Positions 45,001 through 48,000 of a DNA stretch of 64,000 bases are shown here, one piece after another (positions within the stretch are counted from its first letter, which is position 1; each line of letters opens with the position of its first letter). The stretch is from Podarcis melisellensis. Its lineage: Eukaryota. A model generated the notes under the pieces. It was not told the DNA's origin and searched no databases. It saw nothing but the letters and a program-made list of their open reading frames with translations. Location of the stretch: assembly GCA_964234715.1 (NCBI GenBank), contig OZ174276.1. The stretch is one strand, 5' to 3'. The translations under genes and the position numbers were made by a program.

Positions 45001-48000
45001 GCGTTTAAATTTTATGCTGTGCCAGGAAGGGGAACCTTTTTCAGCCTGAGGACTACGTACTGCATTCTGGGCAAGCTGCCAACGGCAGTGAGGCCAGCGG
45101 CAGAAGTGGGCAGAACAATTAATGTAAATTTTACCTTTGTAGAATAGGCTAGTTTCTACACCCACTCACATACCCTCATGCATCCCCCATCCAGGCAAAC
45201 AAGAGGCAGTAACTGAGTTCATGGGCAGATTTCAGCCTGGCAAAAACACTCAGGGTGCAAAACAGGGTCAGTGAGGGGTGTGGCCTGGGCAAAGTGCCAG
45301 GAGCCAGACAGAGAGGCTTGGAGAGGTGCATTCAGTGGCAGAGCTTCATGCTCTGGCACCGGGGGCAGAGAGGAGGCGGGGGCATGGCTGGCGCACGTCT
45401 CAGGAGTGTGACGCACCACCTGCGGGGGCAGGGCGCCCAGTGCGGGTGGGGGAGCAGCCCTGATGGCACCCTGGGGATCGCGCTGCCAGGGGCGGTGCAC
45501 TCCCCTTGCACTCCTCTTCCTCTGCCAGTGGCTGCATTGTGCCAGGACCTGCATTGTACCCTTTGCGTTTCCCAGCTTTTAGGACCTTCTGTCCACAAGT
45601 GTGAAAGTTGCACGGAAACTAAAGAGTCGTGCTGGAGAAGCAGGAAACGTTTGCCTTGTTGGCTTTTCCTTCAGCAAATGAAATATGGGGGTGTCCATTT
45701 CCCCCTTAAATCTAGACTGTGAGATAAGCCTGGAGCAAATCCCTGAGTCTCTTTAACCAGGAGAGTTTGAAATACCTCTCCTTGCATTTTCAATACTCAG
45801 ACCCTCTAGCCCAAACAGGGAGTCTCCAGAAGCCAAAGTACAATATTCTCTGGCCATTCTGAACTAGAGCATGTGATGGTTCAATAACAGCAATGGGAAC
45901 AGTGCATAGAACATAGATCACACCACACTGTGTGCTTCAGCAGCAGCGTCTACCGAAGAAGAGATTTGCTGCTTATTTTTGCACTAGGAGTTAAGTATAA
46001 TTAGCACGTGACAACCCCCTCCTCTCTCTCTTTCTCTCTCCCTGCCTGACTCAGATGCCTATCCTAAAAGTGAGATTATTTACACCTGGAAAAAAGGACC
46101 ATTGTATTCGGTGGAAATTCCACAAGAATCTTCCAGTCTTCTCCAGTATGATCTTATAGGGCAAACAGTCTCTAGTGAAACGATAAAATCCAATACAGGT
46201 AAGATCACACCTGCATGCAGGGTGTCAACATTAGAATATGACCACTGAGATTTTCAACATGGTACTTTTTACACGCTCACAGTGTGATTTGTCTATGTGT
46301 CCAATGGCCCGCTTGCTCCAACTGCTAGTCCTTTGGAGAATAAATAAATGTATCTATTGCTGGGAGTTCTGATTGCTCCTCCCAGTTCCAGGCCACATCT
46401 CTTTTCTGCCATGCAGAAGGCGGTTATAGGCTGATGTGCAAAGGCAAGGAAGCGGGTGTGTTATGGGACAATGAATTCACACTTTGCCTCAAAGCTTCCT
46501 AGGCAAAACAAGCTAAAATACCATTTTATTTGCAAGGTTTATATACAGCAGGAACACTTGGGAAATACAAGATGTTGTCTTGGGTGTAAAATTCAGCTTC
46601 CTGTGCTCTCTTTCATTACCCCCCCCCAAAAAAAATTGTTTAGTCCATATGGTTGTGAAGTTATGCCTGGAAATTTGTGGACAATGTCTGTTGAAATCTG
46701 AGAAGCCTAGCATTTCAAAGGGACGTGGACAAGGCCTCCCTAATATAAAGTAAAACCAGAATTCATTGAAAAATATGGGGAAAATGCAAAAGGGTAGAAT
46801 ATGTTTGCAAATGCAGCTTTTCCTGATAACAGAATTATTATTTTTTAATGATGAATACACACAGCCCTCCCTATGTGTTTATTTAAGACATTCCAAGATT
46901 CTCTAATACATGGACAAAGATAATGCTGATATACTTGTTTCCTAACAGGTGAATACGTAATAATGACTGTTTATTTCCACTTACAAAGGAAGATGGGCTA
47001 CTTCATGATTCAGATATATACTCCCTGCATCATGACAGTCATCCTCTCTCAGGTGTCTTTCTGGATTAATAAGGAATCTGTTCCAGCTAGGACAGTTTTT
47101 GGTATGCTGGTATTATCATTCTGCCCGAAACCACTCTGCATCATTCCATTTATCCACCATTTTTCATTGCTTTGTGTGTTTCTCATAGGCGAGTATTCAC
47201 TTCAGGTACTCTATTTTCATCTGCAAAGGAAAATAGGCTACTATCTCATTCAGACATACATCCCCTGCATTATGACTGTAATCCTGTCCCAAGTTGTGTT
47301 TTGGATCAACAAAGAAGCTGTCCCAGCAAGAACTGTGGCTGGTATTCATGCTTTCTTCTCATGACCTTCATTTGCTCGTTGCTTCGTTCGTTCAGGGTAT
47401 TGTACTGCGATAGAGATTAGCATTGTTTTTAATTAAAGAATGTGACAGAGGAAAACTATGTGTTGAGGATTTACCTGGGGGTAAGTGCCACTGAATCTTC
47501 TGTGTAGTCATGGATCTAACTGAACTCTTGCTGGGGAGATGGTTTCTAATGAACTTCCATAGGATCTCATTGCAAGCCTGTAGCTCTGCGGCTCTAGGAA
47601 TTGAGTGCCACTGAATGCTTCTCTGCTCCTGCCAGTGGAAATGAATAGTACTTGCTGTGGCTTCTAGCTCAGGCTGTAAATCTGTTTATTGGGTACATGG
47701 CAGTTACACAAAGAGAAGTTGGTGTGTGCAGAGCTTGGAAGCCTGAAAAAGGATACATACAGAGGCCTAACAGCTTCCTTGTCACCCTTATTTTGCAGGG
47801 ATCACCACTGTCCTCACAATGACTACGTTGAGCATCAGCGCCCGCCACTCTTTGCCCAAGGTGTCTTATGCTACTGCCATGGATTGGTTCATTGCTGTGT
47901 GCTTTGCCTTTGTCTTCTCTGCACTTATCGAGTTTGCAGCTGTCAACTACTTTACCAATCTTCAGACTCAGAGAGCAATGAAGAAGGCAGCCAGGGCGGC

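Follow-up and report, generated by a model that had tools for sequence, protein, structure and literature searches.

Exons 3A and 3B of GLRA2 are a Nova-regulated case with intronic YCAY motifs (Y being C or T), and alpha-6 GABA-A receptors, made in mammals by the cerebellar granule cells, provide tonic inhibition in these cells and exhibit a distinctive pharmacology. Here we describe a YCAY cluster in GABRA6, the gene encoding this subunit, in a stretch of 64,000 nt from Podarcis melisellensis (GCA_964234715.1, contig OZ174276.1), referred to as the window. The cluster lies in a very short intron, the spacer, between two homologous exons of identical length, termed 7a and 7b, and its sequence and conservation suggest that it is probably a switch for the choice between them. 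It resembles the Nova-regulated exons of GABRG2 (exon 9) and GLRA2 (3A/3B) in that UCAU/YCAY motifs are clustered less than 100 nt from the regulated splice sites in a gene for a Cys-loop inhibitory receptor. The UCAU-rich enhancer of GABRG2 exon 9 goes back to Dredge and Darnell 2003, as cited in PMC3552424. Unlike in these two genes, the GABRA6 cluster is a candidate element predicted from sequence, one cluster would serve two exons, and the motifs coincide with the branch-site consensus. In mouse cerebellar granule cells, peaks are obtained by NOVA2 cTag-CLIP (cross-linking and immunoprecipitation; bioRxiv 10.1101/244905). The 7a/7b pair itself is beyond the reach of mouse Nova datasets, because the solved mammalian alpha-6 has 7a only and lacks the pair.

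In its architecture the locus resembles exons 2 and 3 of alpha-tropomyosin, where a very short intron likewise lies between homologous exons, its branch site being near the upstream donor, and where the steric limit is about 40-60 nt. With branch sites predicted from the consensus, the distance from the 7a donor to the branch-site A is 48-66 nt in amniotes and 61-89 nt in frog. Since the amniote values lie at or above the tropomyosin limit, steric exclusion would be at most partial in GABRA6; furthermore, unlike for the tropomyosin type, RefSeq models joining 7a to 7b exist for this gene. Steric interference is a recognised route to exon exclusivity (PMC5224494). A second parallel is provided by exons Ab and 3 of U2AF1, a tandem duplication in which the choice depends on conserved, clustered branch points preceding one of the copies (PMC5224494). 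Double inclusion of the U2AF1 exons is removed by nonsense-mediated mRNA decay (NMD), whereas in GABRA6 it stays in frame because both exons comprise 153 nt. The statement of the initial annotation that exclusion cannot rely on a frameshift is therefore correct.

The YCAY cluster and its conservation

The spacer (47102..47188 on the + strand, 87 nt, bounded by GTATGC and TCATAG) contains eight YCAY motifs, starting at 47116, 47131, 47141, 47146, 47154, 47157, 47164 and 47183. This confirms the number given in the initial annotation, which had set it against one to two motifs expected at uniform base composition (1.3 by our calculation); averaged over the window, 87 nt contain 1.38. Eight motifs are reached by 0.14% of the 87-nt segments of the + strand, corresponding to three places in 64 kb, and by none on the - strand. 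Six of the motifs fall within 45 nt, a density found at only two places in the window. Mononucleotide shuffles of the spacer gave an expectation of 1.87 YCAY (P about 1e-4), dinucleotide-preserving shuffles one of 5.07 (P=0.015). Most of the excess is thus due to the CA/AT/TC-rich dinucleotide content of the intron, and the excess over this background is real but modest. The other + strand places with eight YCAY per 87 nt are 687-803 and 49311-49434, the latter in the intron following exon 8.

The spacer was compared with those of nine other species, i.e. the sauropsid Logan contigs L001 and L008, which are nearest to the window in the flanking intron, the loggerhead turtle (L012), five passerines (L003-L007) and Xenopus tropicalis (L011). 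The orthologous spacers are 76, 80, 80, 83, 84, 84, 87, 110 and 121 nt long. All ten, including that of the window, contain 4-10 YCAY, equivalent to 4.6-9.2 per 100 nt versus 1.4-2.9 locus-wide, and in all ten a core of 3-7 YCAY is located about 18-50 nt before the 7b acceptor. In the nine amniote sequences this core is made up of CCAT, one to several TCAT, TCAC or CCAC, and finally the block TTTCATTRCTT, present in all nine and ending about 18 nt before the acceptor. The frog intron aligns poorly otherwise and exhibits the arrangement TCAT..TCATtTCAT..CCAT, with four YCAY packed into 24 nt at a distance of 33-60 nt from the acceptor. Between species, several C/T changes occur at the Y positions which leave the motif intact (e.g. 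TCATCAC, CCACCAT, TCATTCAT).

In the window the conserved core extends from 47141 to 47167 on the + strand and comprises TCAT at 47141, CCAT at 47146, CCAC at 47154, CCAT at 47157 and TCAT at 47164. These five of the eight motifs align with the turtle, L001, L008 and the five passerines. None of the remaining three (47116, 47131 and 47183) recurs in more than one other species; 47131 is found again in L008 alone. The cross-species check proposed with the initial annotation thus turned out positively for the core, from frog to birds, and negatively for these three motifs. Judged from the aligned sequences, the YCAY core has been kept since at least the common ancestor of frogs and amniotes, about 350 million years ago.

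Such clusters are rare elsewhere in the gene. The turtle locus (30 kb scanned) has two stretches with at least four YCAY in 35 nt and the frog locus (21 kb scanned) has five, one of them being located in the spacer each time, and only 0-3 YCAY were counted in the 87 nt upstream of 7a. A teleost contig (L002), containing exon 6, a single exon of the 7b type and exon 8, has two scattered YCAY in the 87 nt before this exon and one in the 60 nt after it. This one species is a natural control without a cluster and with background YCAY density.

Downstream of 7b the picture differs from that in the spacer. The weak 7b donor GTATTC and the sequence following it (47342..47371, + strand) contain three YCAY at 47346, 47359 and 47368, as had been noted, all within 30 nt. 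Set against a dinucleotide expectation of 2.46 (P=0.49), this number does not exceed chance. Within 60 nt of the end of 7b we counted 4-5 YCAY in L001, L008 and the birds, three in the window and two in turtle and frog, significant in no species when compared with dinucleotide shuffles. The YGCY motifs mentioned in the same annotation are present as well, three in the spacer and three after 7b, without being enriched (expectation 1.63, P=0.16). The spacer contains no GCAUG, the Rbfox motif, and few PTB-type UCUU/CUCUCU motifs.

Three further features of the spacer were considered and rejected. The predicted RNA fold of 47090-47200 is no more stable than that of shuffled sequences (z=0.34), with the core unpaired in the best structure; an RNA structure acting as docking site, selector or masking device was rejected on this basis. 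Twenty nucleotides of the spacer (47136-47155) are 80% identical to the part of 7a and 7b coding for PCIMTVI (repeat family D2). We rejected the idea that the spacer is the remnant of a third exon copy, as the flanks of the D2 alignments are no better than shuffles and the similarity is probably due to chance. The intron had also been described as a multiple of three without stop codons. This applies to the window but is not conserved: the orthologous introns of 76-121 nt vary in length and frame, only those of the window, L001 and L008 being open, and it was dismissed as a meaningful feature.

Overlap with the predicted 7b branch sites and possible control of exon choice

Candidate branch sites were sought by scanning for the consensus yUnAy before the 7b acceptor. 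In the amniotes every match 18-31 nt before the acceptor is TTCAT and thereby contains a YCAY. Up to a distance of 37 nt, the consensus is otherwise matched only by TTTAT, in the window and in the turtle. The likeliest branch site predicted for 7b in the window is TTCAT at 47163..47167 (+ strand). Its branch A, at 47166, is separated from the acceptor by 22-23 nt and from the 7a donor by 64 nt; the A at 47152, within TTTAT, is predicted as an alternative. The core is positioned 20-50 nt upstream of the 7b acceptor and 40-65 nt downstream of the 7a donor. From the consensus matches we infer that a single sequence makes up both the YCAY core and the 7b branch-point region. If they coincide, a protein bound to the YCAY motifs must compete with branch-site recognition.

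Nova proteins recognise clustered YCAY; their binding close to branch points or splice sites or inside exons silences, and their binding downstream of an exon enhances. These position rules are reported to be deeply conserved (PMC3165201). According to them, the position of the spacer cluster is that of a silencer for 7b and of an enhancer for 7a. In its clustering, its conservation and its position less than about 200 nt from the splice sites in question, the spacer looks like a Nova element at the sequence level, and we classify it as a candidate element acting in cis on exon choice. A YCAY-binding KH protein, the best candidate being Nova1/2, would cover the 7b branch points when bound to the spacer. 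This would block the joining of 6 to 7b and of 7a to 7b and would support the weak 7a donor, giving rise to 7a mRNA. With the spacer free, the branch-point array would be usable and 7b could be chosen. The short donor-to-branch distance of 48-66 nt may act as an additional, partial steric brake on the joining of 7a to 7b, and blocked branch sites together with this distance would be a simple way of avoiding a double-inclusion product with two M1 segments. Nova-type control of the 7a/7b choice through the branch-point array is put forward tentatively, as a possibility that falls somewhat short of an even chance. A stricter version, in which the UCAU repeats serve as both 7b branch sites and Nova sites and the amount of Nova directly sets the 7a/7b ratio by competition on one sequence, appears somewhat unlikely.

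Several observations weigh against the proposed switch. Within single species the enrichment of YCAY over dinucleotide shuffles is modest, with P ranging from 0.006 to 0.39. The spacer as a whole is better conserved than the neighbouring intron (lizard-turtle identity 0.73 versus 0.53-0.66), which is not surprising for an intron of this size, and therefore YCAY need not be the selected unit; part of the conservation would be explained by one branch site and a pyrimidine tract. In passerines the cluster is a (TCAT)n run of varying copy number (4-10 YCAY), partly microsatellite-like, and such a microsatellite can arise by slippage. YCAY are also located after 7b's own weak donor, where they would enhance 7b under the same rules. 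The suggestion of the initial annotation that a single cluster could promote 7a and block 7b thus agrees with the Nova rules as regards position, while its direction does not follow from them. On the whole, its Nova interpretation is partly supported, the YCAY motifs being inseparable from the branch-point consensus TTCAT.

Some of these points would also be expected if the cluster were nothing but a core splicing signal of 7b, consisting of redundant branch sites and a pyrimidine tract in a very short, constrained intron. Exon choice would then be set elsewhere, by splice-site strength, steric limits or exonic elements, and no YCAY-specific protein would take part. The amniote branch-like motifs 18-31 nt from the 7b acceptor, all of them TTCAT, are consistent with this, as are the modest enrichment in most species and the better conservation of the entire spacer, its motif-poor 5' half included, compared with the flanking intron. 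However, one branch site suffices, and yet 3-7 YCAY are retained, among them CCAT, CCAC and TCAC, which are unfit for yUnAy. In addition, the frog has its four clustered YCAY 33-60 nt upstream despite poor alignment elsewhere, and the single exon of the teleost manages without a cluster. We therefore regard a core signal as a rather doubtful explanation. The conservation and position of the cluster would also fit a regulatory site read by one or more other UCAU/CAU-rich binders of the KH, hnRNP or U2AF/PUF60 type. Control of duplicated exons via branch-point and pyrimidine-tract organisation and pyrimidine-binding proteins has been described (PMC5224494). Against such a binder, which we consider quite unlikely, stand the clustered YCAY, the signature of Nova among the described motifs (PMC3165201), and the above-mentioned lack of GCAUG, scarcity of UCUU/CUCUCU and non-enrichment of YGCY.

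Chance, or slippage of a functionless CA/TC/AT-rich sequence, might account for the YCAY density in the lizard, given that the dinucleotide expectation already amounts to 5.07 of the eight motifs, that three of the eight are little or not shared, that copy number varies among passerines and that two other places in the window reach the same density. The occurrence of the cluster in the homologous 76-121-nt intron of ten out of ten species from frog to birds, in loci where such clusters are otherwise rare, argues against this; a chance origin is already disfavoured by the conservation and is very improbable.

The conserved YCAY/branch-point element offers a concrete, mutable handle on the allotment of two receptor versions. 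If the proposed Nova-type control is true, the locus would also allow the Nova position rules, and the NMD-free separation of in-frame duplicated exons, to be tested over deep time. Birds, reptiles, amphibians and several fish lineages can swap the exon coding for the end of the ligand-binding domain and for M1. Work on mouse or human would not show this swap because the solved mammalian alpha-6 has 7a only. If Nova is not involved, the spacer would still be a clear example of a branch-site array kept for about 350 million years in an intron of 76-121 nt.

Transcripts and exclusivity of the exons

Mature mRNA containing 7b without 7a exists in a bird and in a frog. A passerine mRNA contig (L010, 3038 nt, with one open reading frame (ORF) of 465 residues) has exact junctions between exons 6, 7b and 8: exon 6 ends exactly at the GTAAGA of the passerine genome, 7b comes next with 149 of 153 nt identical, and exon 8 follows directly. 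In the frog, a contig of 1840 nt encodes a full 7b protein of 458 residues (P0316). Furthermore, word-based searches retrieved B10K bird models which join 7b to exon 8. The existence of a 7a-only mRNA we infer from the solved mammalian alpha-6.

Both exons in series occur in 14 of 109 annotated alpha-6 proteins with a 7b-type exon, including XP_028573248.1 of Podarcis, and in a cluster of 72 bird models. These models predict two M1 segments and may be either annotation artefacts or real in-frame double inclusion. The Podarcis muralis protein is isoform X2 with 524 amino acids; a second Podarcis model, XP_077780547.1 (X3, 557 amino acids), falls into the same 90% cluster.

Origin of the exon pair and structure of the locus

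Exons 7a and 7b, both of 153 nt and phase 1-1, are identical at 37 of 50 amino acids (74%) and at 101 of 150 codon-aligned nucleotides (67%), and reach 73% over a repeat of 134 nt. The differences are distributed over codon positions 1, 2 and 3 as 10, 8 and 31, with a pS of 0.95, i.e. saturated synonymous sites, and a pN of 0.16. When orthologues are compared, 7b changes mainly and 7a solely at third positions, and the 7b peptide is nearly invariant across birds. This pattern of substitutions indicates purifying selection on both exons. Compared with the closest contigs L008 and L001, 7a of the window differs at five sites, all of them third positions, and 7b at 19-21 sites, 14-16 of them third positions. 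That 7a diverges so much less at synonymous sites may reflect synonymous constraint or conversion, both of which are possible.

A full-database HMMER search with the 7b peptide detected tandem genomic ORFs of the order 7a-spacer-7b in another species and many 7b-type ORFs in fish. The 109 alpha-6 proteins mentioned above were collected with the 7b-like region of a Xenopus laevis protein as query. They originate from shark, sturgeon, reedfish, bowfin, lungfish, frogs, turtles, lizards and many birds; 95 of them contain 7b alone, the others 7a followed by 7b, and teleost alpha-6a in this set is of the 7b type only. Maximum-likelihood analysis of the exons, each 51 residues long, united all those of the 7b type, from shark to birds, in a single clade (support 100/97), and placed the 7a type with exons of alpha-1 and alpha-4. 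The duplication should therefore be older than the split between sharks and bony vertebrates, and we conclude from the tree and the alignments that 7a and 7b are an ancient homologous pair of alternative exons. In RefSeq/UniProt, 7b occurs in alpha-6 isoforms of many vertebrates other than mammals. The pair is already present in public annotation, among others for crocodilians, salamanders, lungfish, sturgeon, bichir and shark; our literature searches returned no paper linking GABRA6 to exon duplication or mutually exclusive exons.

In some sequences one of the copies appears to be decaying. A 137-residue ORF (P0011) on a Logan contig of 933 nt consists of an intact 7a-type peptide, a read-through of the intron and a decayed 7b-like stretch (..QVVWWINKKCISARAL..), which suggests a lineage in which 7b has turned into a relic. 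The Xenopus laevis model OCT88350.1 (P0002, 300 amino acids) is degenerate and alpha-6-like, with 7a-like and truncated 7b-like segments and many radical changes, and is possibly a decaying homeologue. In other X. laevis isoforms 7b is intact.

The window carries a GABA-A receptor alpha-subunit gene on its + strand, with exon-like reading frames containing family motifs near 36383, 40588, 40898, 46144, 46949-47341, 47804 and 63580. Its assignment to GABRA6 is based on sequence identity: the exon peptides of the window are the same as those of the predicted P. muralis protein XP_028573248.1 wherever compared, down to the N-terminal and proline-rich stretches peculiar to the lineage and to every residue of 7b. 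By sequence, the gene is thus GABRA6 of P. muralis or of a very close relative. Exon borders were placed by reading the splice sites directly from the window sequence. Exon 6 (46055..46198, + strand, 144 nt) ends in phase 1 with the donor GTAAGA; it was read from its translation and splice sites and matches XP_028573248.1. Exon 7a (46949..47101, +, 153 nt), the conventional alpha-type copy, codes for the end of loop C/beta10, M1 and the start of the M1-M2 linker. Its acceptor is ...cctaacag and its donor TTG|gtatgc, and its peptide is 100% identical to residues 226-275 of the PDB alpha-6 chain 9oum_C. Exon 7b (47189..47341, +, 153 nt) is its diverged homologue, the peptide of which matches alpha-4 and alpha-6 about equally and less closely than 7a matches alpha-6. 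Both donors, GTATGC of 7a and GTATTC of 7b, deviate from the consensus, as had been recognised at the outset. The intron between 7b and exon 8 (47342..47798, +) comprises 457 nt in the lizard versus about 3 kb in passerines. Exon 8 (47799..48058, +), coding for M2, M3 and the start of the M3-M4 loop, again matches XP_028573248.1. Another contig, L009, has exon 8 with no exon 7 found inside a distance of 1.7 kb.

Two further observations concern the passerines. The spacer of L003 (2389-2498) is 110 nt long, with a TCAT run expanded to ten YCAY, compared with 76-84 nt and 4-6 YCAY in the other four species. In the passerine genome annotations (L003-L007; P0151-P0153) GABRA6 is split into two partial models, the second of which begins with 7b and bears the label GBRA6 or even GBRA4.

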